Source: Oikopleura dioica (taxonomy: Eukaryota > Animalia > Chordata). From it: a stretch of 64,000 nucleotides of DNA. Position 1 is the stretch's first letter. Each line of letters starts with the position of its first letter. The stretch is from assembly GCA_907165135.1 (NCBI GenBank), contig OU015569.1, positions 4,650,001 to 4,714,000 on the forward strand, read 5' to 3'. This document shows positions 10,229-48,646 of this stretch, piece by piece. Both the position numbers and the translations under genes were made by a program. Under the pieces are notes generated by a model. The model was not told the DNA's origin and did no database searches. It saw only the letters and a program-made list of their open reading frames with translations.

Positions 10229-11929
10229 CTAGTACACTTCGCTGGAGCATTTGATGTGGCTTCGTTGGTACCACATTTCGGCGATTCGAGAGTTGAAATC
10301 TTAAAGATGCGAGCTTGGCAAAGTAGCATCAGATACCTTTAATGTTCTTTCCAAAGCGATCACTTGTGTAAACTTCTTTGTTCTCACTGGGAACACAATT
10401 ATTTTTATGCAGAATCAGGGGTTTGCTGCACCAGGCTACTCGTAACTCTCCAATAGCATCGATAAAGAACTCACGATGTCCTTTATTTTCGAATTCTGGG
10501 TCTTAAAAAACATAGGTTATCGAAAGGTGATTTCGCTGATTTTGATTTACCGAAGCGAATTTTTCCAACAGTATTTGTGCGAGCAAGGAAAAAGTTTTCA
10601 ATAACATCGACAACCTGGCATTCCTGCTCAAAGCCAGGTAAGTCGAAGTTTCTGTATCTTTTTCGGCGAAAACAGTAACCATCGTTTCCTGATCGTATGT
10701 CGATAAAGTCTTCTTTCGCCCAGCCACCTCGGACATGACTTAAAAATTATATTCAAGTACCGTCTTATTTACAGTAGTTAACATACTTGTCTAACGCGCC
10801 ACCAATAATGTCGAAACCTGTGCTTTCAGCAACATAAACCATATATTTCAAGTCTGTTTCTTTCGAAAAGACGAAGTCGTCGTCAACCCAGAGATAGAAT
10901 TGAGTGCGCACTTGGCTTTGCGCTAGTGCCCTTCCTGCAAACCAGCCTTCTTTTTCTGGCATTTTGTATTGTTTCACGTTTGTTGACGAACTCCTGATCT
11001 GCTCGAACTTGCTGTCGGGATTGTCGTCGGCCACGATTACAGTGATCCCCGGATAAAACTGACCGATCGACTCGATTAGCCTTTTTAGGCAAGGGTAGCG
11101 GAGATAAGTTTTTGTGATCACAGTAACTCTATCAATGATGGCCTCTGTTTTTCGCTGAGTGAGAACAGGTATTTTTGTTCTTTCAATCGTCACTGGAAAT
11201 CGAATCTTGAAGCTGACCTCTCCAGTCACTTCTAAAGTAACAATGTCTTCTAGCTTTCTGCCGTCGTAGATTTGCGGAATGTATTTTGTTTCTTGAAGTT
11301 TCGCGTTAAAATCTTCAACAGTGATTTTCTGATTGAAGGTGGAATGATGCTCGTCTTGAATTTCGAATGTCGAGAAGAGAGGGCAGTCGATGATGCCAAA
11401 ATAGGATGAAAACTTGGCGTTTATTTCTTTTGTTGGAGAATCAGTGATTTTGATTTTTAATTTTACTGATTCAAACGGCTGGACTTTATATCCACTTGAG
11501 ACGAATTCAACTGGCAAATTTGAAGGCGTCATTAAAACAGCTGGTTTAGCAATTTGAAAGAAGTTGTCTCGCTCCCATAATCTGTGATCATGAAGATGAA
11601 CTTCTGATCGATGGCCGGTAAAGCGTTCTTTTCCGCACTCACAATTTTCATGCTCGTTTTTCTTCGTTGCAAAGATATCGGGTATTTTCCTCGACCACGG
11701 TCTCAGCTTTGACGGCTCTATAATTTCGTATTCCAGAATATTTAAACTCGATTCGTCGCTCTGTTTTCTGTAATTATAGAGATCTTGCGTACTCGGATTG
11801 TAGTCAAACATCCCTTTCAAAGATTTACAATTCAGATTTGATAAAAATTATGCTCTGGCTTTTGTAAATCATTCCTGGAAAACATGTTCCCAAAATGAAG
11901 CTAGCTAACAACAAGAAGTATTCTCTCAT
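10229..11929 (-). CDS. Beta-1,4-N-acetylgalactosaminyltransferase (B4GALNT1/2-like, GT-A family), spliced
   Basis: ORF 10765-11820 carries VTVITKTYLRYPCL, VIVADD, GWFAGRALAQSQVRT and YLWVDDDFVF. Spliced downstream exons give VVDVIENFFLART, DPEFENKGHREFFIDAIGELRVAWC and MWYQRSHIKCSSEVY*. N-terminal hydrophobic anchor MREYFLLLASFILGTC. Confidence 0.9.
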
Positions 11930-13115: not shown

Positions 13116-16084
13116 ATGAAATTTTTGAAGACAGCAGTCACTATTCCTGCTGTCTTTGGCAATGAGATTAACTTCGACCCGTCGATGTGCGATGGCACCG
13201 AAATGGCTACGACAAGAGAATATCGCCCAGTTTGTGGTACAAACGGAGAGACCTTCAGCAACCCAAGCGTCGCAAAGATGAACTACTGTATGGGCGTTCC
13301 AGGGCTGAGCGGGATCAAGAGCTTCGGTCAGTGCCTGGATTCGGGCTGTCCTGCCTTTTGCCCGCGCGATTTCCGGCCTGTCTGCGGCTCCGATGGAGCT
13401 ACCTACCCAAACGAGTGTGTACTCAAAGACATGAGCTGTAGAACGGGTCGGTTGGTGATCAAAGTATCCGATGGGCCCTGCGCTGAAGTCGACAATGTTG
13501 ACGTGGAGCTACTTGAAGTCGTAAATCTCAAACAAGCTGGCAAGCCCGCCAAGAAGGGTAAAAAAGGCAAGAAAGGCAAAGGAAAGAAAGCTGGAAAAGG
13601 CAAAAAAGGCGGAAAAGGAGCCAAAGCACCAGCTAAAAGAAAGTGTGCCCACGTCGCTCAAGATGCAGAAGTCTGCGGCTCAGATGGAATCACATACCAG
13701 TCAGCATGTCACCTAAAGCAGAAAAATGAGGAAGGCCTCACAGATGCTATCCGAGCTTATAAGGGAAAATGTAGAGAAGAAGTGGAAGAGGAGGAATCCG
13801 AGAGTATGCAGATGGATGCTACCTACTACGAAGAAGAGGAAGAGGAAGAAATTCTTCAAGGCGACATCGGCCTTAATAGCTGTGAGCAGGGTTCTAAATT
13901 TGAGGCAAAATTTAAAAGTCTAGTCTGTCCGTGTCCGTGTCATCCGCCAAAATCCCAAGTCTAGTCTATCCGTGTCCGGATCGAAAACGGATTTTTGTCC
14001 GGTCTAGTCCCGGACATGTCCGTTTTGTCCGTTTTTGTCCGTAAAATCCTGACACATTTTTTTAAAGAAAAAGTCTGGCCTAAAAAATCTTGTCCGTAAA
14101 TGTCCGTAAAATTTCATGGGTAAAAAACTAATTTTTATCGAAATAAACCCGACAAGACCAAAAAAAATCTTTGAAAATAATTTCGGCAGAGAATACATCG
14201 AAATATCGAGTTCTTTTCAAGCCAATTTAAGAAAATCAAGGGACTTGCCTGGGACAAGAGTCGCAAGTTTATTGCTATTTTTTCGGAAGAAGATACGCTC
14301 AGCTCAAAGACTTCATAAAATTTCTAGCTAAGCTCAGCATCAACTGGTTAAAACCAGCCCGTCTCAGAGTCTCGGAGTCAGAGAAGATAAAAATTTATTT
14401 GAAGAGAGAAATAAGAAGTGATTTTCTCAAGTTAGAGAATAGTCTTTTTGAACAAGACTAGAACTTTCACAACGATTTTTTTAGCTAGGACCTTTTTCTC
14501 AAAGCTGAGCTAAGCTGTATGAAAATTTGCGAAACTGAGCTGAGCTTGCGTTTTCTTAATGTCAGCTGGTGTTATCCAAGCTGACCTTAGCTGGCGTTAT
14601 GAAAAAAATCATTAGTCTGAGCTGAGTTCTCTCAAAATGATCGAGCTGAATGACTGAGCGGGCTAGCCCGACCGCTGACCCTCAACACGTTGAGCTGGCT
14701 TTTTCCGATAATTGCTGTGCTGAAAGTCCCAAATTAGGACTCGCAATGAATTAGCCGAATAATGAAGGACCTAATATAATATTATTTTTTAATTTAATTT
14801 CTTATTTTCATTGAGACTCGGTCCTCAAAGTTCCGGCTTCGGACCAGCAAAAAGACATATCAATTAAAAGTTATCATCGATATTTTCCGGCAAAAAGTCA
14901 AAATTTTGATATTTTCAAATTTTTAACTGAAAACCTGGCTTATATTATCAAACAATGACGTTGGTTCAGGCTTTTTTGAAACGAATTCGAACTCAAATCG
15001 TGCTTTTTTACGGATTTTTTCGGATTCTGCCCGGATTTTACAGACACGGACAAAAGTCTGGGGTTGTCTGGATTTCACGGACAAATACGGACAAATACGG
15101 ATTTTGTCCGGATCGTGACAAAAGTCCGGTCTAGGCTGTCCGTTTTTTCCTCAACCAATAGACTAAAAGTCTAGTCTGTCCGTACGGACAAGACCGGACA
15201 GACACGGATAAAATCCGTACACGGACATGTCCGTTTAGAACCCTGGCTGTGAGGAAAGATGCCCTATGATCCACTCGCCAGTTTGTGGCTCAGATTATCA
15301 AACGTATTACAATGAGTGCGAGCTCCGAAATGCCGCTTGCAGAAAACCTGATCTCAATATTTCCATAATGGAAGAAGGTGAATGCCCATGTCCCGGATTC
15401 ATGTGCCCACGAATGTACATGCCTGTCTGCGCTTCTGATGGAAATACATATGCCCAGTAAGGACGAGATAGAGTTTTTTCGAATATTTTTTTTCGAACTG
15501 TCTCTTATACTTTTTAGTCCCTGTCTTTTCAAATCAGAAGCTTGCGCTTCTGGCACAGAAATGGAGATTCTAAGTGCTGGCGAATGTCCCGAAGACATGG
15601 CGCGGATCGAGCTAAAAGGTGCCTTCTGTCCATGCCCTCGAATTCTCGCTCCTGTTTGTGGTGAAGATGGCAAAGACTATAGGTAAAACGTCACGGGTAA
15701 TCATTAATTCTAATAGGAGGTTGTAGCAACGAATGCGAGGCAGAATGCAACGATGTGGAAATCAAGCAGCACTGCAGCTGCGAGTTCGACAGTTGCGCAA
15801 CTATGCTCGACGATTTCAACATGATGTTCGGAGGTTTCTTCGATGACGTCGAAGAAGAGACAGTAGAGGAAACCGAAGAGGAGGAAGATGCCGAGCTCTG
15901 CTCAAATCAGGCAGCACGAAACTGCAACGCCAGTTCAGGTGAAGTTTGCGGCTGGCGAGAATCAGATGGATACCAGTTCTATCGCAACCATTGTGCCATG
16001 GTCAGACAGACATGCAGAGATGACGACCCCGCAGTGCTTAAACAGGAACCAGTTTGCGTCAGAAAGGTTTGTCTCAAGAAGTAA
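13116..16084 (+). CDS. Secreted multi-Kazal-domain protein (about 7 Kazal-like repeats), interrupted by a hAT-type element in a coding exon
   Basis: Signal peptide MKFLKTAVTIPAVFG. Repeated PVCGSDG/TNG-TY-N-C motifs at 13.2, 13.4, 13.7, 15.27, 15.4, 15.65 and 15.95 kb. GT-AG introns near 15458 and 15683. Removing 13887-15245 plus one TSD restores N-S-C-E-E-R-C-P-M-I-H-S-P-V-C-G-S-D. Confidence 0.9.
13887..15245. mobile_element. Non-autonomous hAT-type DNA transposon (1359 bp)
   Basis: Perfect 12-bp TIR CAGGGTTCTAAA / TTTAGAACCCTG. 8-bp TSD GCTGTGAG (13879-13886, 15246-15253). Dense subterminal TGTCCG/CGGACA repeats in both arms. No transposase ORF. Confidence 0.93.
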
Positions 16085-23887: not shown

Positions 23888-25733
23888 CATGAATCCAAAA
23901 TTCATCTTCAAAAGGTCACTCGCTAATTTTGGGAAATGAGCAACTTGCTAACTAGATTTGACAAGTTAGTCAAGGCCAGGAGGGTGCTTTGTTAAGGATA
24001 CCTAATTAAAGCAGTTCTTGACTTACACTTCCTAAGAGAGTGCGTGAATTCTCAATCAAATCTCTCTCCACAAAAATAATATCTCAATTCAAAACGACAT
24101 ATTTCCAAAATGTAGATAGACTACAATATACTGTTAATATGAAAATATAGAGATTAATAAAATATTATTAATACTATCATTTGAAATACACCAAGATATA
24201 CGTACTTTCTTTCTTCATTCAAATTTATTTTGCTGTGATTGAAAGAATCTACATTGTAGATTCCACAATCTGCATTATGTAGCGCTATTTTATGTTTTAT
24301 CCGACTTATGCAGCTACAATAAAAGCAAAAATACAGAAAAAAGTAGTCAAGAAAAAATCAAGAGACTTACCACAAGTGCAGCGGAGGAGTGAGTGACGGT
24401 GTCGAGGGAGGAGACGATATTGTTGGAAGACTGGTAGCCAAAATCTTGGGAAATCATAAGTTCGTCGTTCGAGTCCACGATTTTTTGTGAGGAGCTTGTC
24501 ATCGGAAAATAATCGATATTATCCCTACAAGTTGATTATGCTCTGTTTTCTTGTTTTTTCTGAAAAGAAAAGCGGAAGTTATATATGAGGCCTCGCCCTT
24601 TTTCCTTTGGGTAAATTTCTGGCAGTTTTGAAAAAGGAGGGGCCATCCTTTATGATCGATTCATCGTCACATGATTTAGCTCAATATTGGTCGATATCAT
24701 CGCGTAATATTCTGGTTAAAAATATAATGTCCAATGGGATACATCTTTCGTCATGCATTTTTAAGAATATGTCAAACATTTTCCTTCTGCTCAACTGGAA
24801 AAAGGCAAAAGTCCGACTAGTAATAAATTCGAACCAACAAAATAATCATCAAGCTATTTTTTACCGTTGACGGACATTAATACGGCTGCGCCAACTTTTT
24901 ACGGGGTTTGCATCGATTGCTACGATTGAGTCCTTTTTTACGGTTATAAATGCATTGTAGGGACCGTAGCAATCAACGCACAGGTTAGGGTGGGCATCAA
25001 CCAAGGCCTAGATAGCCTCAGAGTTTAATAATTTTCTAAATGAGCGACAAACCCGACCTTGGTTGATGCCCAACCTGGACTGTGCGTTGATTGCTACGGT
25101 CCCTACAAGAGATTCATAGCCGTAAAAGAACGCAACCGTAAAGGTAAATCCCGTAAAACGCAGAAAAGGCGCGCAGTCGTATTGACCAGCTTTTTAGGTC
25201 AGCATTTTTATAACTTTTTTGGCTTGAGGTATCTTCAAAATTTAAATTGGAGGATGATCCTTGGCCAAAAGAAAATTTTCCACCGGTCGAATTTTTTGAA
25301 CCGGCCGGTTAAACTCGCGGTAAATCGCGGTTCAGCCCCTTATGACCCTAGAATACCCCTAATATGGGTATCAATCGACTTCCTATGAAATTTCAAGTCG
25401 AATGAAATATGAACCGCGGTCAACCGCACTTAACCGGGCGGTTAAAATCGCGGTTTAGCCCTTTTTGACCTTCAGAGACCCCTAATACGGGTATCAATCG
25501 ACTTCTTATTCAATTTCTTATCATAATAAATAAAAACCGCGGTTAACCGCGATGAACCGGCCGGTTAATTCGCGCTAAATCGTGGTTCAGCCGATTTTTT
25601 TATGCTCAAACCCCCCTTCAGCAACTCACAACCTTAACTAAAAACACTTATACAAAAAATGAATAAAAAATTTCTGAAAAACGAACACCATAATAGATAA
25701 ACAAGAAGGGGGAATCTGGTAACAAGTAAATAC

Positions 25734-25752
25734 GGGTGAGGGTGGGGTTGGG
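25734..25752 (+). other. G-quadruplex-forming motif GGGTGAGGGTGGGGTTGGG leading minisatellite 1
   Basis: Four G-runs of 3 or more with 1-3 nt loops. Homolog on the minus strand at 36541-36560. Confidence 0.75.
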
Positions 25753-25793
25753 GACAGAACTAAGACTGATCACCTTAGTTTTAATCGCCTTTA

Positions 25794-28700
25794 TCAAGCC
25801 CATTTTTAATAAAAAGCCAGGGACGGGGCTGAGACGGCCCTTCGGGCCGTCAAACCCATTTTTAATAAAAAGCCAGGGACGGGGCTGAGACGGCCCTTCG
25901 GGCCGTCAAACCCATTTTTAATAAAAAGCCAGGGACGGGGCTGAGACGGCCCTTCGGGCCGTCAAACCCATTTTTAATAAAAAGCCAGGGACGGGGCTGA
26001 GACGGCCCTTCGGGCCGTCAAACCCATTTTTAATAAAAAGCCAGGGACGGGGCTGAGACGGCCCTTCGGGCCGTCAAACCCATTTTTAATAAAAAGCCAG
26101 GGACGGGGCTGAGACGGCCCTTCGGGCCGTCAAACCCATTTTTAATAAAAAGCCAGGGACGGGGCTGAGACGGCCCTTCGGGCCGTCAAACCCATTTTTA
26201 ATAAAAAGCCAGGGACGGGGCTGAGACGGCCCTTCGGGCCGTCAAACCCATTTTTAATAAAAAGCCAGGGACGGGGCTGAGACGGCCCTTCGGGCCGTCA
26301 AACCCATTTTTAATAAAAAGCCAGGGACGGGGCTGAGACGGCCCTTCGGGCCGTCAAACCCATTTTTAATAAAAAGCCAGGGACGGGGCTGAGACGGCCC
26401 TTCGGGCCGTCAAACCCATTTTTAATAAAAAGCCAGGGACGGGGCTGAGACGGCCCTTCGGGCCGTCAAACCCATTTTTAATAAAAAGCCAGGGACGGGG
26501 CTGAGACGGCCCTTCGGGCCGTCAAACCCATTTTTAATAAAAAGCCAGGGACGGGGCTGAGACGGCCCTTCGGGCCGTCAAACCCATTTTTAATAAAAAG
26601 CCAGGGACGGGGCTGAGACGGCCCTTCGGGCCGTCAAACCCATTTTTAATAAAAAGCCAGGGACGGGGCTGAGACGGCCCTTCGGGCCGTCAAACCCATT
26701 TTTAATAAAAAGCCAGGGACGGGGCTGAGACGGCCCTTCGGGCCGTCAAACCCATTTTTAATAAAAAGCCAGGGACGGGGCTGAGACGGCCCTTCGGGCC
26801 GTCAAACCCATTTTTAATAAAAAGCCAGGGACGGGGCTGAGACGGCCCTTCGGGCCGTCAAACCCATTTTTAATAAAAAGCCAGGGACGGGGCTGAGACG
26901 GCCCTTCGGGCCGTCAAACCCATTTTTAATAAAAAGCCAGGGACGGGGCTGAGACGGCCCTTCGGGCCGTCAAACCCATTTTTAATAAAAAGCCAGGGAC
27001 GGGGCTGAGACGGCCCTTCGGGCCGTCAAACCCATTTTTAATAAAAAGCCAGGGACGGGGCTGAGACGGCCCTTCGGGCCGTCAAACCCATTTTTAATAA
27101 AAAGCCAGGGACGGGGCTGAGACGGCCCTTCGGGCCGTCAAACCCATTTTTAATAAAAAGCCAGGGACGGGGCTGAGACGGCCCTTCGGGCCGTCAAACC
27201 CATTTTTAATAAAAAGCCAGGGACGGGGCTGAGACGGCCCTTCGGGCCGTCAAACCCATTTTTAATAAAAAGCCAGGGACGGGGCTGAGACGGCCCTTCG
27301 GGCCGTCAAACCCATTTTTAATAAAAGCCAGGGACGGGGCTGAGACGGCCCTTCGGGCCGTCAAACCCATTTTTAATAAAAAGCCAGGGACGGGGCTGAG
27401 ACGGCCCTTCGGGCCGTCAAACCCATTTTTAATAAAAAGCCAGGGACGGGGCTGAGACGGCCCTTCGGGCCGTCAAACCCATTTTTAATAAAAAGCCAGG
27501 GACGGGGCTGAGACGGCCCTTCGGGCCGTCAAACCCATTTTTAATAAAAAGCCAGGGACGGGGCTGAGACGGCCCTTCGGGCCGTCAAACCCATTTTTAA
27601 TAAAAAGCCAGGGACGGGGCTGAGACGGCCCTTCGGGCCGTCAAACCCATTTTTAATAAAAAGCCAGGGACGGGGCTGAGACGGCCCTTCGGGCCGTCAA
27701 ACCCATTTTTAATAAAAAGCCAGGGACGGGGCTGAGACGGCCCTTCGGGCCGTCAAACCCATTTTTAATAAAAAGCCAGGACGGCTGAGACGGCCCTTCG
27801 GGCCGTCAAACCCATTTTTAATAAAAAGCCAGGGACGGGGCTGAGACGGCCCTTCGGGCCGTCAAACCCATTTTTAATAAAAAGCCAGGGACGGGGCTGA
27901 GACGGCCCTTCGGGCCGTCAAACCCATTTTTAATAAAAAGCCAGGGACGGGGCTGAGACGGCCCTTCGGGCCGTCAAACCCATTTTTAATAAAAAGCCAG
28001 GGACGGGGCTGAGACGGCCCTTCGGGCCGTCAAACCCATTTTTAATAAAAAGCCAGGGACGGCTGAGACGGCCCTTCGGGCCGTCAAACCCATTTTTAAT
28101 AAAAAGCCAGGGACGGGGCTGAGACGGCCCTTCGGGCCGTCAAACCCATTTTTAATAAAAAGCCAGGGACGGGGCTGAGACGGCCCTTCGGGCCGTCAAA
28201 CCCATTTTTAATAAAAAGCCAGGGACGGGGCTGAGACGGCCCTTCGGGCCGTCAAACCCATTTTTAATAAAAAGCCAGGGACGGGGCTGAGACGGCCCTT
28301 CGGGCCGTCAAACCCATTTTTAATAAAAAGCCAGGGACGGGGCTGAGACGGCCCTTCGGGCCGTCAAACCCATTTTTAATAAAAAGCCAGGGACGGGGCT
28401 GAGACGGCCCTTCGGGCCGTCAAACCCATTTTTAATAAAAGCCAGGGACGGGGCTGAGACGGCCCTTCGGGCCGTCAAACCCATTTTTAATAAAAAGCCA
28501 GGGACGGGGCTGAGACGGCCCTTCGGGCCGTCAAACCCATTTTTAATAAAAAGCCAGGGACGGGGCTGAGACGGCCCTTCGGGCCGTCAAACCCATTTTT
28601 AATAAAAAGCCAGGGACGGGGCTGAGACGGCCCTTCGGGCCGTCAAACCCATTTTTAATAAAAAGCCAGGGACGGGGCTGAGACGGCCCTTCGGGCCGTC

Positions 28701-29224
28701 AAACCCATTTTTAATAAAAAGCCAGGGACGGGGCTGAGACGGCCCTTCGGGCCGTCAAGCCCATTTTTAATAAAAAGCCAGGGACGGGGCTGAGACGGCC
28801 CTTCGGGCCGTCAAACCCATTTTTAATAAAAAGCCAGGGACGGGCTGAGACGGCCCTTCGGACCGTCAAACCCATTTTTAATAAAAAGCCAGGGACGGGG
28901 CTGAGACGGCCCTTCGGGCCGTCAAGCCCATTTTTAATAAAAGCCAGGGACGGGGCTGAGACGGCCCTTCGGGCCGTCAAGCCCATTTTTAATAAAAGCC
29001 AGGGACGGGGCTGAGACGGCCCTTCGGGCCGTCAAGCCCATTTTTAATAAAAAGCCAGGGACGGGGCTGAGACGGCCCTTCGGGCCGTCAAGCCCATTTT
29101 TAATAAAAAGCCAGGGACGGGGCTGAGACGGCCCTTTGGGCCGTCAAGCCCATTTTTAATAAAAAGCCAGGGACGGGGCTGAGACGGCCCTTCGGGCCGT
29201 CAAGCCCATTTTTAATAAAAAGCC
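25794..29224. repeat. Tandem minisatellite 1, 56-bp unit, about 61 copies, each with a hairpin
   Basis: Unit AATAAAAAGCCAGGGACGGGGCTGAGACGGCCCTTCGGGCCGTCAAACCCATTTTT. Period 56 verified (starts at 25864, 25920, 25976). Contains the 8-bp stem GACGGCCC-TTC-GGGCCGTC. Confidence 0.98.
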
Positions 29225-30333
29225 AAAGGGCTAAACCGCGATTTTAACCGCCCGGTTCAGTGCGGTTGACCGCGGTTCATATTTTGTTCGACTCGAAATT
29301 TCATAGGAAGTCGATTGATACCCATATTAGGGGTATTCTAAGGTCATAAGGGGCTGAACCGCGATTTACCGCGAGTTTAACCGGCCGGTTCAAAAAATTC
29401 GACCGGTGGAAAATTTTCTATTTGGCCAAGGATCATCCTCCAATTTAAATTTTGAAGATACCTCAAGCCAAAAAAAAGTTATAAAAATGCTGACCTAAAA
29501 AAAAGCTGGTCATTGATGCCCCACACCGGTAAAATGGCTTGATGATCATTTTCTTAGTCCGAATTAATTGCTAGTCAGACTTTTGCTTTTTTCAATGCAA
29601 GTAGAAGTTCTGAAATCTTCTATTCGCCCACCCTTACTTTCCTAAACGCTGTTTCTAGGACTTACACTGAAATAAAATGATAATCGTTCAAAATTTCGAA
29701 GTTTCTCTAAGTCGGTTTATTTCGGATTAGTTTGAACGTTCACGATTGGCTTAATTAATTTCGCCCTGTGCAAAAATATCCCCTTCTAGAGAGTTTACCG
29801 ATGTCTGCTCGAGTTCTTCCTCTCCCTGACCATTTTCCCACTTCTCTGATCGAATGTTTTTACGCAATTTTTGACCTAGATAATAAAAAATATTCCAATT
29901 GTCTAGTGAGTAGTCGTAAAATTCAGGCCTACTTCAGTATGAAGTTTTGTTTGGCGCATTCTGACTAGATGACTCATCAAATTAAGAAAGGGCTCATTGT
30001 TCTTGCGCGGATGATTGTTTCCGCTACTCCAATTTATATTTAATATAATTCCTGTCATTTCTTACGTACCTTTATTAAAAAACCAAAAATCTCTCTCCTC
30101 TTGGAAATTAAAGATGAACTTCGAGTTGTCATCGTCGGTCATGGGGGATGATATTTACTTGTTTGATTAAACTTGGGGAATTAAACCAGGTCCACAATGG
30201 GGACCTTTTTCGAAGCTATCATGCGTTCATTGTTAGCTTAGGCTAGTTTGAAATATCTAAGCGAGTATTTTTCCATTTTTTTGAAATGGAAAAGCCGTTT
30301 GAAAACAACTTTTATACGAAAAAATCGGCAAAA

Positions 30334-32754
30334 ATGGACCTCTTACCTGTATCTCGAGCAAGAGTGATTCTGAGCGGGATCCTTGCTCTAAAGCTCGTCT
30401 TGAATGCTTGCTATCAGTCAATTTCGTTGATAAGGATTAATTTCTCACAGTCGTGGCAGCAGCAAAGAATGGAATATTACCAGAGAGGGGCGAAATTTCA
30501 AGTGTGTTTTTGAGCTGCATTCAGCTGTGAATCTTGAACTTGGAGATTGGGCCCTTTCTTTTGATCTCAAAGCCAATTGCTCCCGCGGTGTATTTGATCA
30601 TTTTAAAACGAAACTGATGATTTTACTTTTGCATTGAAGGTCAATAAATAAAGACGTTCAGAAATAACCTTTCCCTGATCATGGCAATATTCGCTTACTG
30701 TATCCAACAGTAAGCTGTTTCCTAATTGAAGAAGGTATTCTTGATCAAGAATTATCATTTTATCCAATATATAAGCCAGTTTTAAGCTCTATGCCGTCAA
30801 TGAATGTAGATAAAACTTCCGATACCGAAATTCTAGTGCCAGGTCGCACATTCTGACCTTGACTAGCCGTGGAACTCGCCCTGCGGGAAGGCAATGGCTC
30901 CTTCTTTTTAGCGCGGCAAAATACTTCCAGCCTTGGCTTAATTCTGTAAGAGAAGAATTTCAACACGTGTGATGGAAACAGGATAGAAGTGGGAGAATGA
31001 GCAGGTCACCTAGGCGCAAACTGATAGTGTGCATCGCGTACTTCTACGCTGGAGTGGCAGGCACCGTCTACGCCTTGCGCATAAGGAAAGGTCACTGACT
31101 CTTTGATTAGCACTTGATTGCGCGATTATCAAACGTGTAGCTTTCGAGCAATGTCAGAACCCAGGAAAGACGTGATGGCCGCGGAGTTCTCGGACAAGGT
31201 AGAGTTCATCAAGCTATCAAATTAGTGCGAAAAAGACACTGCTAAAATGCCGTAGCTCTAATTGAATCTCATTGAACTCAATTCAAGGCGACTCACGACC
31301 CTCTGTCATCAAAGCTATCGGCCTTGCCCAGGAGGCGGATGAAGCAGAAGAAGATGTTGACCCATCGGGTCAGAAGAATATGATTCTAGCGATCTCGGTC
31401 ATCATTGCATTCGTCTTTGCCGTAGCTGGCATATTCATCGGCGTTTATTTCAGAATCGAGCGCTTTTTGAAATGCATCGACAGGTAAATTTCAAAAACGA
31501 TAAAAGAGCGGCTAAATACTGTATCTCAAGAATCGGGGGAACCTCAGAACTAGAAAGGCCGCTCTTAGACGACGACACTAAGTCTATCATTGGCGATGAT
31601 GCGATGAGTACACTGAAGACTCAGAATGAGACTGGCTTCGTTCACTCATGCCCCGCAGAGTCGTATCCAATGAAGAAACAAATCTATGAAAAGGTAAAAT
31701 TTTCAAGATTAATTCGCACAAAAACATTTTCAGGCAAATCGCACGCCTCATGTTGCCCGACGTTCAATCGGACCAGATCTTCCTCAAGCAGATCCGCTTA
31801 TGATAGGTACAGTTTTATTTCGCTACTGTTATCTAATAATTCTTATAGCAACACCAATGACACGGAGAAAGCGAGAAGGATCCATCGCTGGAGACACGAT
31901 GTCGCTCGCTTCGTTCAAGTCCGAATCAGGCCGGTCTATCCGGTCTATGTTCTCAGCCCGATCTATTGGAGCGAAATCATTTGGCTCAATGTTTTCAGCC
32001 ACCTCAAAGGACTCGAAATCCTCTTCAGCTCTCAGAAACAAGATTAAGTACGACGTTGAGTTTTACCTTCAATTTTACTGACAATTTTTAAAGCATGTAT
32101 CGAAAAATGCGCCAGGATAGGAAAAAATTCAAAGACGATGATACTGGTTCCGTTATTTCCGAGGCCAGATCACAAAGATCCATGGTCATCGACGGAAGTT
32201 CCGTAAGACAAATAGCTTACATATGAGACTATTTTTCATCTCAATATTTTAGCGATCAGTTTCTGGCTCAAGCAGACATCGCGGAAAACGAGGAAGCAAG
32301 ACCGAAGAACATTCAGGAGCTTCAGCTGGTTCTAACTTTGGCAATCGACCACAGGCAAGTTTTTAATCGAGCTAGCAAGTTCCTTAAAATTGATGACCCC
32401 CGACTGTGGGAAGCCACCCTGCCCTTCGTAATAAAATGAGCGATGAGTTACCTGTCTGGGAACGTTAAGCAACTGCTTCACGGATAAATTATATAATGAT
32501 TTCAGGAGGATGACGTGATGTCGATGAGATCCGCTCGATCGACGGCTTCACGAGCGTCCAAGGTGTCGCGTCGTTCCACAACATCCGTGACGTCGAAGAA
32601 ATCTACGATGTCACTGAAATCGCTGCGGTCAAAGAAGACGAAAGAGGAACCCGCGCAAACCGAGTTCTTGAACTTCGGGAGTTACGTCCAGCAAGAATAC
32701 AATGACGATCATCAAGATGAGCCGGCTGCTGGCAACTCGGATATGCTCTTCTAA
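30334..32754 (+). CDS. Uncharacterised single-pass membrane protein with a long Ser/Arg-rich cytoplasmic tail
   Basis: Signal-like MDLLPVSRARVILSGILALKLVLNA spliced to HRGSSKEWNITREGRNFKCVFEL. TM segment MILAISVIIAFVFAVAGIFIGVYF at 31.4 kb. GT-AG-linked S/R-rich exons run to 32754. The exon path between 30.6 and 31.3 kb is unresolved. Confidence 0.6.
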
Positions 32755-32950
32755 GCTGACCCTTATCCAATCCTGTAATTGTATATTTCAACGATGAGAA
32801 TACTTTACAGCTACAAATCTTTTGGTTCATTTTCGAGCACTAGCGACTGACAGATATTCTAATTCATATTTTTGTTCCATGTCCAATTTATATACTGCAT
32901 CTACCAATATTGCCATCGAAATAAACTGCATGATATAATACTGACACGAC

Positions 32951-35263
32951 ATGTTGCGATTAATTCCAAGATCGACATTGCATTTAATCCATTCTTTGTG
33001 TCCATGTCCGTGCATTTACGCATTCGCAAGCAAGAGGAATCACGCAGAAAATTGTGCCGAAAAGGATTCAATGAAAAATGCATATGGGTAGGGTGAATAA
33101 GTTCACCGAAGCCTAATACTTTCCGTTGGCATTCGTCTTACCCTCGCATTAAGAGAAATGGGCTACAACTTTGAGATGGGACCCAACGGCCTCGCAATGG
33201 TTTTTAATAAAGAAAATCATCTCATAAGAAGACTTCTGTGGCTAGTTGTTGTTGTTTTTGGCTTGTTTTATTCCGCCCAGAATGTTTACAAAAATAGCAT
33301 ACGGTAACAATGCCGTACTTTTATTCATTATCGTGTTTTTTTAAAGATATCTGTCTTATGCAAGCAGTAGGAAGCCAGTCGCTTCATCGGGAGTAATTCA
33401 TAATACCGATGAACACACGGAGGACTCTTTCGGTCTCGGATTTCCGAAAGTTGTTGTTTGGAAAGGCTGATTTTGATTATAGCCATTCCTATTCAGCTAG
33501 ATCTTTTAACTTCAAAATCTTTCTGAGTTTAAATTCAATGCATTCGATGACAAAGCTGCGAGATTACCACAAAAAGCAAGTAGAAATTGGAAAGACATCA
33601 GCAACGATTGAAGGTGTTCTATTTTCAATTGCTTTAGAAAAAACTTCTAGCCTTTTTGCATTCCATGGCACTTTACTATGTTGGAGATTCCACTGGTGAG
33701 GTGGAGACCAAATTGAATATCAACTACTCTGATTTTGAAAGGGTTACGAATATGATTTCGCACAAATATTTCGAAAATAAACCCGGCAAAGATGAAATAG
33801 ACATAGCGGACCTCTACCGTGAGACCTATCCAACGTTGCAGATAACAATTTGTCAGGTATTCCCATGCATCAAATACCTGAATCATCTTCTAGGTCGGAG
33901 AGACTGACTGCCAGAAATCGTGGAGAATTGAGAAGACTCACTATGGGTCTCGGTTAATGCTGGTTATCAGACAACCTGAATGTGAAAGGCATTAACCCTG
34001 GTCAAGAATGTGCCAAGTTCTCAAAATAGCAGACATGCCCGAGCATCAACGAACGAAGGCTGTTCAAGGACGGCTGAAATTCATCACGACAACGATCAAA
34101 TACAACGTTTCCGACTGGGCATTTGGATGGCAGCAGCATATAGGAAAGATCGAGAACGTAGACACGGTGTGAAAACCACTATGAAATCGATCATCGTTAA
34201 GATGGACTGACGCTGTATGTTGCTGAAGATACAGACGAAGTGATTAATGAAGCATCGGGCATGAAACTGAACTTAGTATTGGGTTTCGAAGTTCAAATAA
34301 TTATGCGCAGCGAACTTCTTTGAACCCTTCTACAGAAAGTATCGGTTACATAGGTTATCAAGATAAATGGTATTTTAAGCTGAAAAGATAATTAAGACTA
34401 TAAAAGATTCCATACACGTCTACTTGGACGACCATACTCAGATTGCGTCCCCTCGGAGAACACAATGGATTTCTTCAATAAATACAGAAGGTGAAGCTGT
34501 CCTCTCCAAGAAAATCATATTTTCAGAGACCACTGTCTTTTCGAATGCATGGCCAAAGAGATCATTAAAAACTGCGAATGCATACCAGGAAAAGTGATCA
34601 GTTTTGAATCTTGGCTACACAAACAAAATTAACGACTCTCCAAAGCTCTTTTCACGGTGAAGGAGATAAACGTCTCGACGTGTACTTTGAAGCAAGGTAA
34701 ATTTTCCGAATGACAGATCGTTATAGAATTGCATTCAGCCACAGTCTGCGCAACTCCTCAGTACTTCCAATTCAATTACAATAAGTGCAACTGCTTGCCA
34801 TCGTGCAACAAGAAAGATTTTACTATAAACTCGGTCCACTATGGAAAGTGGCGGGAATCAATGAGGAGATCGCATCTCATTTCTGGCTCCGCCTCCTTCA
34901 CACTTTACGCATCTGAGCAGGAAAGGAAGAGTGAACTGCGAATTTTACGATGATGCAAAGACTCGACCTTTTAATAGGATGAAATCGTGTATCAAGAAGA
35001 GCCGGATTATCCTTTCCACTCTTTTATTAGCGATATTGGTGGTGCTACAGGGGTGATTCTTGGAATGTCGCTAGTTACAGTAATTAGTTGAGTCAATACT
35101 GATTGTATTTATCTTGACATGTTCCGATTAAGGCAGCCTGGAGTACTTTGTCGCGCGAGCATGGCGCTTTATCGCTAGTCTCTACATCTCAAAGGGAGAA
35201 ACAAAGAAAAATAGAAGAATCAAAAGCTCGCACTCACAAACGGAAGTTTTCGCCACTCTGTGA
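32951..35263 (+). CDS. DEG/ENaC/ASIC-family ion channel subunit
   Basis: TM1 RRLLWLVVVVFGLFY, FPKVVVC-LNSM, THYG-MC, Cys-rich ectodomain (CLFECM, NCECIPG, CNCLPSC), TM2 SFISDIGGATGVILGMSLVT. The start codon is tentative. Confidence 0.9.
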
Positions 35264-35294
35264 TCTTTTAATAATAAAAAATGGCGCGTTTATT

Positions 35295-37250
35295 TTAAAA
35301 ATTCATGCCCTGAATAGAATAGTGTTTAAATTATTAAGTCTTTGTGCTTATGAATTTAATTTACCAAATTCGACTGATCTACGTATTTTGCTCTCTTGCC
35401 TGCTACCGTGGGCGAGAGATATCACGACGGAGTCTGAGGGCCCGGGCCGGGGTTTTGAATATTTCGCGCACATTCAAGTATTTTCCCATGGCTGATGGAG
35501 GACTTTTATCTGGTGGAAGACCCCATTGATGGAAGAAAGGTCTAACCTAGGCTATTTAAGATAAATTAATCTTTAACTAATAAATAGATAATAATTTTGA
35601 AAAATCTTGATCATGTGACTCTTGGAGGACCCCTGGAGGACCTTTTCTGGTGGAAGACCGGCCTTCATGGAAGACCCTTAAAATTCAGCCCCGTTTCATG
35701 ATTTTTAAATTTAAGGGGCTTGACGGCCCTTCGGGCCGTTTCAGCCCCGTTCCATGATTTTTAAATTTAAGGGGCTTGACGGCCCTTCGGGCCGTTTCAG
35801 CCCCGTTCCATGATTTTTAAATTTAAGGGGCTTGACGGCCCTTCGGGCCGTTTCAGCCCCGTTCCATGATTTTTAAATTTAAGGGGCTTGACGGCCCTTC
35901 GGGCCGTTTCAGCCCCGTTCCATGATTTTTAAATTTAAGGGGCTTGACGGCCCTTCGGGCCGTTTCAGCCCCGTTCCATGATTTTTAAATTTAAGGGGCT
36001 TGACGGCCCTTCGGGCCGTTTCAGCCCCGTTCCATGATTTTTAAATTTAAGGGGCTTGACGGCCCTTCGGGCCGTTTCAGCCCCGTTCCATGATTTTTAA
36101 ATTTAAGGGGCTTGACGGCCCTTCGGGCCGTTTCAGCCCCGTTCCATGATTTTTAAATTTAAGGGGCTTGACGGCCCTTCGGGCCGTTTCAGCCCCGTTC
36201 CATGATTTTTAAATTTAAGGGGCTTGACGGCCCTTCGGGCCGTTTCAGCCCCGTTCCATGATTTTTAAATTTAAGGGCTTGACGGCCCTTCGGGCCGTTT
36301 CAGCCCCGTTCCATGATTTTAAATTTAAGGGGCTTGACGGCCCTTCGGGCCGTTTCAGCCCCGTTCCATGATTTTTAAATTTAAGGGGCTTGACGGCCCT
36401 TCGGGCCGTTTCAGCCCCGTTCCATGATTTTTAAATTTAAGGGGCTTGACGGCCCTTCGGGCCGTTTCAGCCCCGTTCCATGATTTTTAAATTTAAGGGG
36501 CTTGACAATGGCTGGGAACTCTGAGGTGATCAATCTCAGTCCCCAACCCCGCCCACACCCATCGTTTTTAAAATTCAAATTGACAAAGTTTTCAATAATG
36601 TTATGGTTTTGAATTTATTTTTTCAATCTAAAGATTTCCTTTTATTATTATTTACAAATTATTATTATTAAGTTTATTCATTATTATTAAAACAAAATCA
36701 AAGTTATAATAATTGAAGGAAGAAGAAGTTTCTTAGGTCAGTTATTGAGAGAGGTGAATTGTGAAAAATGTTTCTAGACGGGGGGTTGTTGTTGTTCTTC
36801 GCGGAGGACCCACTCCCACGTGGCGCAAGATGCGCGCCAAAAAGAGCAAAAAGATTGGGACGAGAAAAACACGCGCAAATGCCCCAATCTATTTCGCCCT
36901 CCGTCGTGAAATCTCTCGCCCACGGTAGTATTTCCTGAATTTAACAAACAAAAGTCAACGAGCCAAGTCGTCAAGATCAACACTGCGCGGTGATTGTTGA
37001 CAACGTGGCACATGAGCCATGTGACATGGCGAATCGATTTTTCCTTGAGGGTCATGTTCGACAATTGTGGCAGTGCACTAGGGCAGGTTTCGACAATGAG
37101 TGACAGGAGATATTCGGATACGAAGTCATCAAGGAGGAATCTGTTTGCAATAAATATATAGTTAAAGACGTAAATGGCGTGTGCGGTAATAGCGGGTACA
37201 GGGATAAATGGACTTGACGACGTCAAGTTGACGTTCACTAAGTAATCGGG
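35295..37250 (-). CDS. Unknown gene whose penultimate exon is split by the TA-flanked element (5' end unresolved)
   Basis: Open exon FLLDDFVSEYLLSLIVETCP...VVNNHRA with a phase-0 donor. Reconstituted 48-nt exon EILAGKRAKYVDQSNL lies between AG (36935) and GT (35364). Last exon GMNF* is followed directly by AATAAA (35289-35294). No family recognised. Confidence 0.45.
35682..36506. repeat. Tandem minisatellite 2, 56-bp unit, about 14 copies, each with a hairpin
   Basis: Unit TTTAAATTTAAGGGGCTTGACGGCCCTTCGGGCCGTTTCAGCCCCGTTCCATGATT. Its reverse complement aligns to the minisatellite 1 unit. Confidence 0.97.
36541..36560 (-). other. G-quadruplex-forming motif GGGTGTGGGCGGGGTTGGGG leading minisatellite 2
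   Basis: The plus strand reads CCCCAACCCCGCCCACACCC. It sits on the same side of the array as the 25734 motif. Confidence 0.75.
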
Positions 37251-47828: not shown

Positions 47829-48646
47829 TTATTCGAGTTCGGCGAGTTTTCTTTCGAACTCTTGGATTTTTTCGTCGCAGTTGGTCAAATTTCGCGAAGG
47901 CTCCCAAGTAGCTGACTTGCGTGGCCAGTACTTCCAGATGACTTTGTATTGGAAGCCTCGTCCCCAGCGACGCTTGTCGATGATTTCATCCACTTCCCAT
48001 TCGGTCATATCGACCGGCGGTTTGACAGGTTCCTCGTCGGATTGCTCGTCTTCTTCTGTGTAGTCGAACTCGGGCGAGATCTTTGCCGATCGCTTCCTTT
48101 TCGGCGAGCTGCGATTCGAGGAATTAGAGGAAGAGTACTCAAACTCCTTGGTAGTGTCTTCAGAAATCTTCTTCTGTTCTACGACCGGTTGATTTTCGGG
48201 AAAGTCTTGAAGCTCTTCTTCGTCGGACGGGTACTCCCGGAGAGATGCCTCGTATCGGACTACTTCTCCAAGGTTTTGAATCTCATCCAGCGCCCAGTAA
48301 CGAGTCTTGTTACCTTGCTCCATCTAAAATAAAAATGTTAGGGCGATATTTTGACACCATTAAAAATATCAAACCCTTAGATCTACTAAGACACTCTCGA
48401 AATTGAGGAAAGCTAGGCTTGGCAACCTATGTAGAAAACCAGAGCCAGGGTTCTGAAAGAGCTATAATGAAAAGCGGCATGTTGAAAAACCTTATCTGTA
48501 TGATAATCGATTACGTGAATCATCTTTATAGATTTTTCTTGCGAGCTAACCTTGTAGTGGACCATGTTGTTGATGATCTTCCTGTCTGAAATCGTTGTCA
48601 TGAAGTCGGTTCTTTTCAGATTTCCCCGTTTCACTACTTTGTTCAT
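47829..48646 (-). CDS. Chromodomain protein (intact C-terminal chromodomain plus a degenerate N-terminal one)
   Basis: WEVDEIIDKRRWGRGFQYKVIWKYWPRKSATWEPSRNLTNC. The upstream exon MNKVV...ISDRKIINNMVHYK joins in phase 0 to MEQGNKTRYW. Confidence 0.8.

Follow-up and report, generated by a model that had tools for sequence, protein, structure and literature searches.

A 64-kb stretch of the X-specific region (XSR scaffold) of the Okinawan Oikopleura dioica assembly OKI2018_I69, described in PMC8008620 and here called the window, contains two arrays of tandemly repeated 56-bp units. Each array is preceded by a short leader, and the two leader-plus-array modules lie in two different transposons, el1 and el2. 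We found that both arrays are most likely members of a family of hairpin minisatellites, with 56-bp units and in high copy number, residing inside non-autonomous cut-and-paste transposons, i.e. elements with terminal inverted repeats (TIRs), of Okinawan O. dioica. Furthermore, el1 is probably a chimera, whose leader and array were captured once from an el2-like family and have been passenger cargo since then.

Tandem Repeats Finder placed array 1 at 25794-29225 (period 56, 61.5 copies, 99% matches) and array 2 at 35684-36506 (period 56, 14.7 copies, 99% matches). Cutting the arrays into units gave 62 and 15 units, respectively, which bears out the common unit length of 56 bp reported in a preliminary description of this DNA. 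When the two consensus units are aligned in the register of the leaders, 42 of the 56 positions are identical. The identity is concentrated in the palindrome, as that description had also claimed: the stem and bulge positions, GGGCTGARACGGCCC-NNN-GGGCCGTCAAGCCC with the loop excluded, match at 28 of 29 positions, compared with 14 of the other 24, which are mostly AT-rich spacer (Fisher p = 0.0012). The 3-nt hairpin loop is exactly reverse-complemented between the arrays, i.e. TTC versus GAA. The core hairpin GACGGCCC-TTC-GGGCCGT is confined to the two arrays within the 64-kb window, where 0 occurrences are expected by chance. When folded as a single DNA strand, every unit forms a two-tier hairpin with an outer stem of 5-6 bp, an inner stem of 7-8 bp and a 3-nt loop. 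The folding energies range from -14.5 to -16.8 kcal/mol, and the z-scores against shuffled sequences from -4.1 to -5.8. The combination of intact stems, a drifting spacer and an exactly inverted loop fits palindrome-templated correction, i.e. intra-strand template switching, although the conserved stems may instead reflect selection for a structure by which the turnover of arrays is promoted.

Array 1 grew in place, as shown by the order of its unit variants. The TCAAGCCC variant, also present in array 2, occupies the first unit and seven of the last nine, while the middle is made up of about 50 units with the derived TCAAACCC variant, forming a homogeneous block between older edges. The derived variant also has the weaker outer stem (-12.3 vs -16.8 kcal/mol). 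The expansion is thus recent and took place within the array, and hairpin strength did not drive it.

The leaders, about 60 nt long and situated directly before the first unit of each array, align at 73%, so the homology previously proposed for them holds. Both open with a canonical G-quadruplex (G4) motif, GGGTGWGGGYGGGGTTGGGG, and both contain a small hairpin around TGATCAC, in which the stem pair is compensatory (CTAAG/CTTAG vs CTGAG/CTCAG). No homology between the two loci was found upstream of the initial GGGTG or downstream of the arrays. The module borders read AC/GGGTG and AT/GGGTG on the proximal side and GCCA/AAGG and CTGAA/TTTT on the distal side (slashes marking the borders); they show no target duplication, and the distal ends of the two arrays fall at different phases of the unit. 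Position 25734, given in the preliminary description as the start of the feature, is the start of the leader and not of the element; el1 begins at 25184.

Both carriers have TIRs and target site duplications (TSDs) of fixed length: 281-bp TIRs with ATT on either side in el1, as opposed to 27-bp TIRs with TA on either side in el2. The earlier claim that one module sits in two unlike TIR elements was thereby confirmed. A BLAST comparison of the el1 and el2 shells, i.e. the carriers outside the module, gave no similarity, and the interior of el1 at 25569-25733 is likewise unlike el2. Judged from these sequence features, the 3-bp TSD of el1 and the 2-bp TSD of el2 point to different superfamilies. 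The TA duplication and short TIRs of el2 are those of Tc1/mariner-type MITEs (miniature inverted-repeat transposable elements). Open reading frames (ORFs) wholly inside el2 do not exceed 55 amino acids (aa), and a 154-aa ORF crossing its right end had no Pfam match. By length, the longest ORFs overlapping el1 are of 109 and 91 aa. The el2 target reads gcTAgt, a CTAG palindrome, and a minus-strand ORF (37238-36774) extends from the right flank into el2. As for el1, it is inserted in an older element with 84-bp inverted repeats that are 81% identical (24798-24881 and 29512-29593). The older element also includes a small foldback (24940-25110) with a depth of 3-14 times single copy, making the locus a transposon nest.

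Evidence from other individuals was obtained by placing Logan contigs of four DNA runs on positions 24700-25910 at 80% likeness. Contigs of the single-copy flank were found in three of the runs, here called X1, X4 and X7, with depths of 26, 78 and 53, respectively. Summed depth amounted to about 17-31 times single copy for the outer TIR of el1, to about 1-10 times for its interior (25479-25724), to hundreds of times for the leader bins, a figure inflated by contig averaging, and to about 3600-6200 times for the unit bins. Summed contig word depths are not equal to copy numbers, and contigs entering array words inflate the leader figure; only the rank order was consequently used. In this order, units are far more abundant than leaders, and leaders far more abundant than the interior of the el1 shell.

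In most of the leader copies, the sequence upstream of the leader turned out to be el2-like. At least 12 distinct X4 contigs agree with the leader over its first 39 nt and switch at 25772 to an el2-like second half (ACTCAGAGTTCAAAGCC..TGTCAAGCCCC), and in each of X1, X4 and X7 between 8 and 15 contigs depart from the reference just after the hairpin into an el2-like spacer (CTTAAATTTAAAAATCA). The loose-end groups listed at 25734 and 25740 all have an el2-like, AT-rich upstream flank (X1, X4 and X7). Their consensus is AACAAAGATAATTTGAATTTTTAAAACAAT in X7 and near-identical in X1 and X4, and the consensus at 25734, ending in ...ATAATTTGAATTTTTAAAACAAT, matches the sequence found before the leader of el2, CAATTTGAATTTTAAAAACGAT. 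As this flank matches el2, homology in the bulk of the copies extends upstream, and a sharp boundary at GGGTG is a property of el1 alone. It is hence better explained as the breakpoint of one capture than as the end of a cassette. The preliminary description had named, as an outcome that would speak against its cassette, that all copies belong to one transposon family with an overlooked common flank; for the majority of copies this is largely what we found.

The el1 insertion is polymorphic, and the mobile unit is the TIR element. In X4 and X7, one contig each follows the left flank to 25185 and then aligns to an inverted copy of 24860. As 29512-29593 is the inverted repeat of 24798-24881, the sequence after 25185 is the right flank, and the contigs represent a precise empty site, which in both runs fits a single ATT. 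In X1, too, a contig breaks off at 25185, leaving 21 letters unmatched. Contigs spanning 25498-25778 in X1 and X4 (about 91% identity) cross from interior to leader unchanged, and those spanning 25217-25782 in X7 (93% identity) retain the same junction. Diverged copies of the el1 shell therefore have one common chimeric junction. Within the shell, the 123-bp subterminal repeat varies between individuals and copies in both copy number and arrangement. Contig joints in this region jump backwards by 123 nt or by about 100-111 nt, while a single joint skips 179 nt.

The origin that we consider probable for el1 would involve the following steps. The main host of the minisatellite would be the TA-flanked, short-TIR elements of el2 type, which would include the G4 leader together with an upstream stretch of at least about 30 nt. 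A member of an unrelated long-TIR family, with GAC...GTC ends and a 3-bp duplication, would then have gained, in a single event, a fragment that starts at the 5' edge of the G4 motif and extends into the array. We infer that this uptake most likely occurred while the double-strand gap that excision leaves was being repaired, by means of template switching or end joining. Internally deleted elements with filler DNA usually arise through repair of this type. The chimera would thereafter have been moved by the transposase acting on the el1 shell, the array being passive, and array length would shift in place via replication slippage, unequal exchange or repair synthesis. Such a change of length in place would account for array 1, where older units at the edges enclose a homogeneous centre of about 50 derived units.

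Several observations weigh against this origin. No convincing microhomology was seen at the capture junctions 25733/25734 and 29224/29225, and the capture mechanism is deduced from this one pair of junctions. The copy numbers rest on summed word depths with the inflated leader figure mentioned above, and the basis for attributing an el2-type shell to most leaders is a loose-end consensus of about 30 nt. Other upstream contexts are present at some of the loose ends, e.g. at 25787 in X4.

In the preliminary description, leader and array formed an independently mobile or amplifying cassette that hitch-hikes on different DNA transposons. Such a cassette, mobilizing itself by rolling-circle (HUH) or fold-back replication or by site-specific recombination and entering the shells independently, would account for the sharp proximal boundary common to both window copies, for the much greater abundance of the module than of the el1 shell, and for the very stable hairpins with a GAA/TTC triloop. 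Triloops of this type are of the kind used by single-strand DNA enzymes. It is nevertheless very unlikely, as in most leader copies the supposed boundary is preceded by el2-like sequence, the distal ends fall at different phases, the module is without target duplication, and the diverged copies of the el1 shell have one common junction. Its ends are moreover not 5'-TC/CTRR-3', the insertion is not A^T, and no Rep/Hel ORF is present in the window, and neither ends of its own nor rolling-circle or autonomous movement found any support. What remains of the cassette is amplification in place, as recorded in the variant map of array 1, whereas its independent mobility is not supported, given the el2-like upstream flank and the shared junction. 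The same junction, found in el1-shell copies at 91-93% identity, and the precise empty site in two individuals also argue against hitch-hiking via repeated capture. A structure-driven form of recurrent capture, where the G4 motif and hairpin array would stall repair synthesis and be copied repeatedly into whichever transposon is under repair, draws on the position of the breakpoint exactly at the G4 edge and on the loop inversion, according to which template switching within the hairpin does occur. We still regard it as decidedly unlikely, given that a single capture junction was seen and that 88 kb of other loci contained no copy. Similarly little credence is given to the minisatellite as a 'parasite of transposons', which would stall gap repair, be recopied into unrelated families of DNA transposons (TA-type, long-TIR with a 3-bp TSD, hAT and foldback), spread along with each of these and expand in place, reaching about 0.5% of a very compact genome.

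Compared with a single capture by el1, a nested insertion followed by erosion would start from a whole el2-like element entering the el1 shell, after which deletions would have removed both its TIRs and its upstream interior and left the leader and array, all else following the course proposed for the single capture. Transposable elements are indeed nested at this locus, el1 itself lying inside the older element bounded by inverted repeats, and the array adjoins the inner edge of the right TIR as a deletion would leave it. However, two separate deletions are required, one of them with its endpoint precisely where the G4 motif begins, and no remnant of the el2 TIR or of its AT-rich upstream part is found in el1, making this course of events unlikely. 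The chance of an assembly artefact, or of an independent convergent origin of the two arrays, is negligible. While the length of an array may be misjudged in Nanopore assemblies, and homopolymers do contain many of the single-base variants in length, the units, leader and el1 junctions are present in the independent short-read contig sets of four runs, and leaders of 60 nt and stems of 29 nt that are homologous in register speak against convergence.

A number of other candidates were rejected. Derivation of the units from the 123-bp repeat of the el1 shell, with which they share TTCAGCCCC/GGGCTRAAC, depends on a match of 9-10 nt that is within chance (about 0.1 expected, by our own estimate) and leaves the junction unexplained. 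The two opposed arrays are not the arms of one giant foldback, as each has its own TIRs and TSD and only el1 is missing from the empty-site allele. Nor is either carrier a foldback element, since in each a single array, oriented one way, is located outside the TIRs. Membership in hAT was discarded because the 8-mers flanking el1 and el2 differ, so that there is no 8-bp target duplication, and a Helitron or Helentron because the border sequences lack 5'-TC...CTRR-3' and the carriers have TIRs and TSDs.

Coordinates of the two carriers and their modules (positions within the window; strand of the carrier or feature where given).
Feature	Position	Strand	Remarks
el1 TSD left, ATT	25181..25183	.	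direct reading
el1, 4.3-kb, probably non-autonomous long-TIR transposon with module	25184..29511	+	ends GACCAGC...GCTGGTC
el1 left TIR arm (281 bp)	25184..25464	+	96% complementary to 29225-29512, 288 aligned columns
123-bp subterminal tandem repeat of el1 shell	25322..25568	+	2 copies, 80%
el1 interior, ~165 bp, low-copy, ending at the probable capture junction	25569..25733	+	depth ~1-10x single copy
Leader of module 1	25734..25793	+	G4 motif GGGTGAGGGTGGGGTTGGGG and small hairpin CTAAG-ACTGATCAC-CTTAG
Array 1	25794..29224	+	62 units of 56 bp (unit cutting)
el1 right TIR arm	29225..29511	-	inner edge adjoins last unit of array 1
el1 TSD right, ATT	29512..29514	.	sequence reading
el2 TA duplication left	35404..35405	.	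sequence reading
el2, 1.5-kb, probably non-autonomous short-TIR, TA-flanked transposon with module	35406..36925	-	TIR CCGTGGGCGAGAGAT(A/T)TCACGACGGAG, 26/27
el2 left TIR, 27 nt	35406..35432	+	one mismatch to right TIR
el2 interior distal to array	35433..35683	-	42-bp direct repeat (35496-35536, 35634-35674)
Array 2	35684..36505	-	15 units of 56 bp; GAA loop read in leader orientation
Leader of module 2	36506..36560	-	G4 motif GGGTGTGGGCGGGGTTGGGG and hairpin CTGAG-ATTGATCAC-CTCAG
el2 AT-rich interior upstream of leader	36561..36898	-	final ~30 nt resemble flank of most genomic leader copies
el2 right TIR	36899..36925	-	pairs with left TIR
el2 TA duplication right	36926..36927	.	sequence reading

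The surroundings of the two elements were searched in several ways. An Rfam scan of the window gave no match, and a Pfam search for a transposase or Rep among ORFs of the window, including the 154-aa ORF at the right end of el2, found none; the domains detected were of the Kazal, chromo and ABC-transporter types. The plus-strand ORF 13116-13964 has three Kazal domains (E = 1e-23) and the minus-strand ORF 47829-48323 a chromo domain (E = 2e-13); each of these belongs to a host or retroelement gene unrelated to the arrays. The ORF at 10765-11820 is 99% identical to Oidioi.mRNA.OKI2018_I69.XSR.g14585. Shell, leader and hairpin are all absent from the 88 kb of other OKI2018_I69 loci, which were sampled via paralogous glycosyltransferase genes.

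Outside the assembly, scans of IMG/VR, JGI metagenomes and GTDB genomes with the hairpin and leader patterns gave nothing relevant, the matches being single terminator-like hairpins of bacteria and phages as well as one unrelated hairpin tandem with a 23-bp period. The latter is located at 1296-1363 of L015 (Ga0066844_10014326), a marine metagenome contig of 44% GC that ends in a 23-bp tandem of the core hairpin GACGGCCC-TTC-GGGCCGTC. This tandem adjoins a long satellite of the 10-bp unit CATATCTGAG, has no leader, and is otherwise unlike the window. The peptides of two leader-spanning ORFs (50 and 55 aa) had no protein with common words in the searched collection. Words sampled from the leader and units of el2 (window 36340-36700) were present at 7-21% in three marine metatranscriptome runs, and none of them was found in the contigs of O. 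dioica RNA runs. The repeat family is undescribed in the literature that we found, including the assembly paper (PMC8008620) and the paper on cryptic species (PMC11067885).

The O. dioica genome is among the smallest and most rapidly rearranging of animals. To our knowledge, its DNA transposons are poorly described. The present family adds to them a hairpin minisatellite of thousands of units carried on transposons that are still mobile, as other individuals lack the 4.3-kb insertion of el1. With that many units on a mobile carrier, the family is a plausible source of structural polymorphism, of fragile or recombination-prone sites and of assembly breaks. It also illustrates, in clean form, how transposon families exchange sequence. 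The present evidence does not reveal any new mechanism of mobility; what we describe is a neat but otherwise ordinary case of a satellite borne by transposons, previously undescribed in this genome.

Associations of this sort have been reported elsewhere, and the case in Oikopleura represents a known kind of transposon-satellite association and not a new mobile element. Internal satellites with palindromes, borne by transposable elements, and the capture of tandem repeats by MITEs have both been described (PMC3879986, PMC12628747). The closest known systems are MITEs that contain tandem repeats, e.g. DTC84 of the bivalve Donax trunculus and miDNA4 of Xenopus. In DTC84, each core repeat has a palindrome, proposed as a hotspot of length change, the variants are ordered, and the flanks are regarded as a 'cassette' (PMC3879986). 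As in DTC84 and other elements of the pearl type, later allied to Helentrons (PMC7492417), the Oikopleura carriers are probably non-autonomous and contain a central array of core repeats with one palindrome per repeat and ordered variant units. DTC84 differs in having up to 5 repeats, a microsatellite at one end of the array and AA flanks (PMC3879986), whereas the Oikopleura arrays consist of 15-62 units, are preceded by a G4 leader instead of a microsatellite, are enclosed by clear TIRs with ATT or TA, and occur as one array in two shells. Xenopus miDNA4 is similar in being a TA-type Tc1/mariner MITE with an internal satellite that ranges from one monomer to arrays, but no conserved hairpin, G4 leader or second, unrelated carrier family has been reported for it (PMC12628747). 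Furthermore, its satellite is flanked by AT-rich microhomologies (PMC12628747), of which none were seen in Oikopleura.

Further cases include Xstir and foldback elements such as Tetris (reviewed in PMC12628747). Foldbacks, e.g. Drosophila FB and Tetris of D. virilis, are likewise TIR elements, consisting mostly of tandem repeats that are able to seed satellites (PMC12628747), and el1 resembles them in its long arms with 123-bp subrepeats. Their arrays are, however, located in both arms and inverted, in contrast to the single, one-directional internal array outside the TIRs of el1 and el2. Chimeric or internally deleted DNA transposons with filler from gap repair are known from Ds, from P-element derivatives and from Pack-MULE-like capture. 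Like these, el1 has kept its own ends and mobility while its interior appears to have been replaced by foreign sequence acquired once, the difference being that the filler is a fragment of another transposon's minisatellite and not host gene DNA, and that the mechanism is in our case deduced. Non-autonomous Helitron and Helentron elements also carry satellites (PMC7492417, PMC4067079), and the Helentron-borne satellites of oysters (PMC7492417) operate by a different mechanism, the defining features of which are absent here. They share with the Oikopleura family the spread of hairpin-bearing tandem repeats by a mobile element, and rolling-circle read-through can make arrays; el1 and el2, on the other hand, have no Helitron ends, no insertion at A^T or T^T and no Rep/Hel gene in the window. 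Within this range of associations, the Oikopleura family is distinctive in its long arrays of 15-62 units, its G4 leader, and the documented passage of the module from one TIR family to another, with polymorphism persisting in one of the two.

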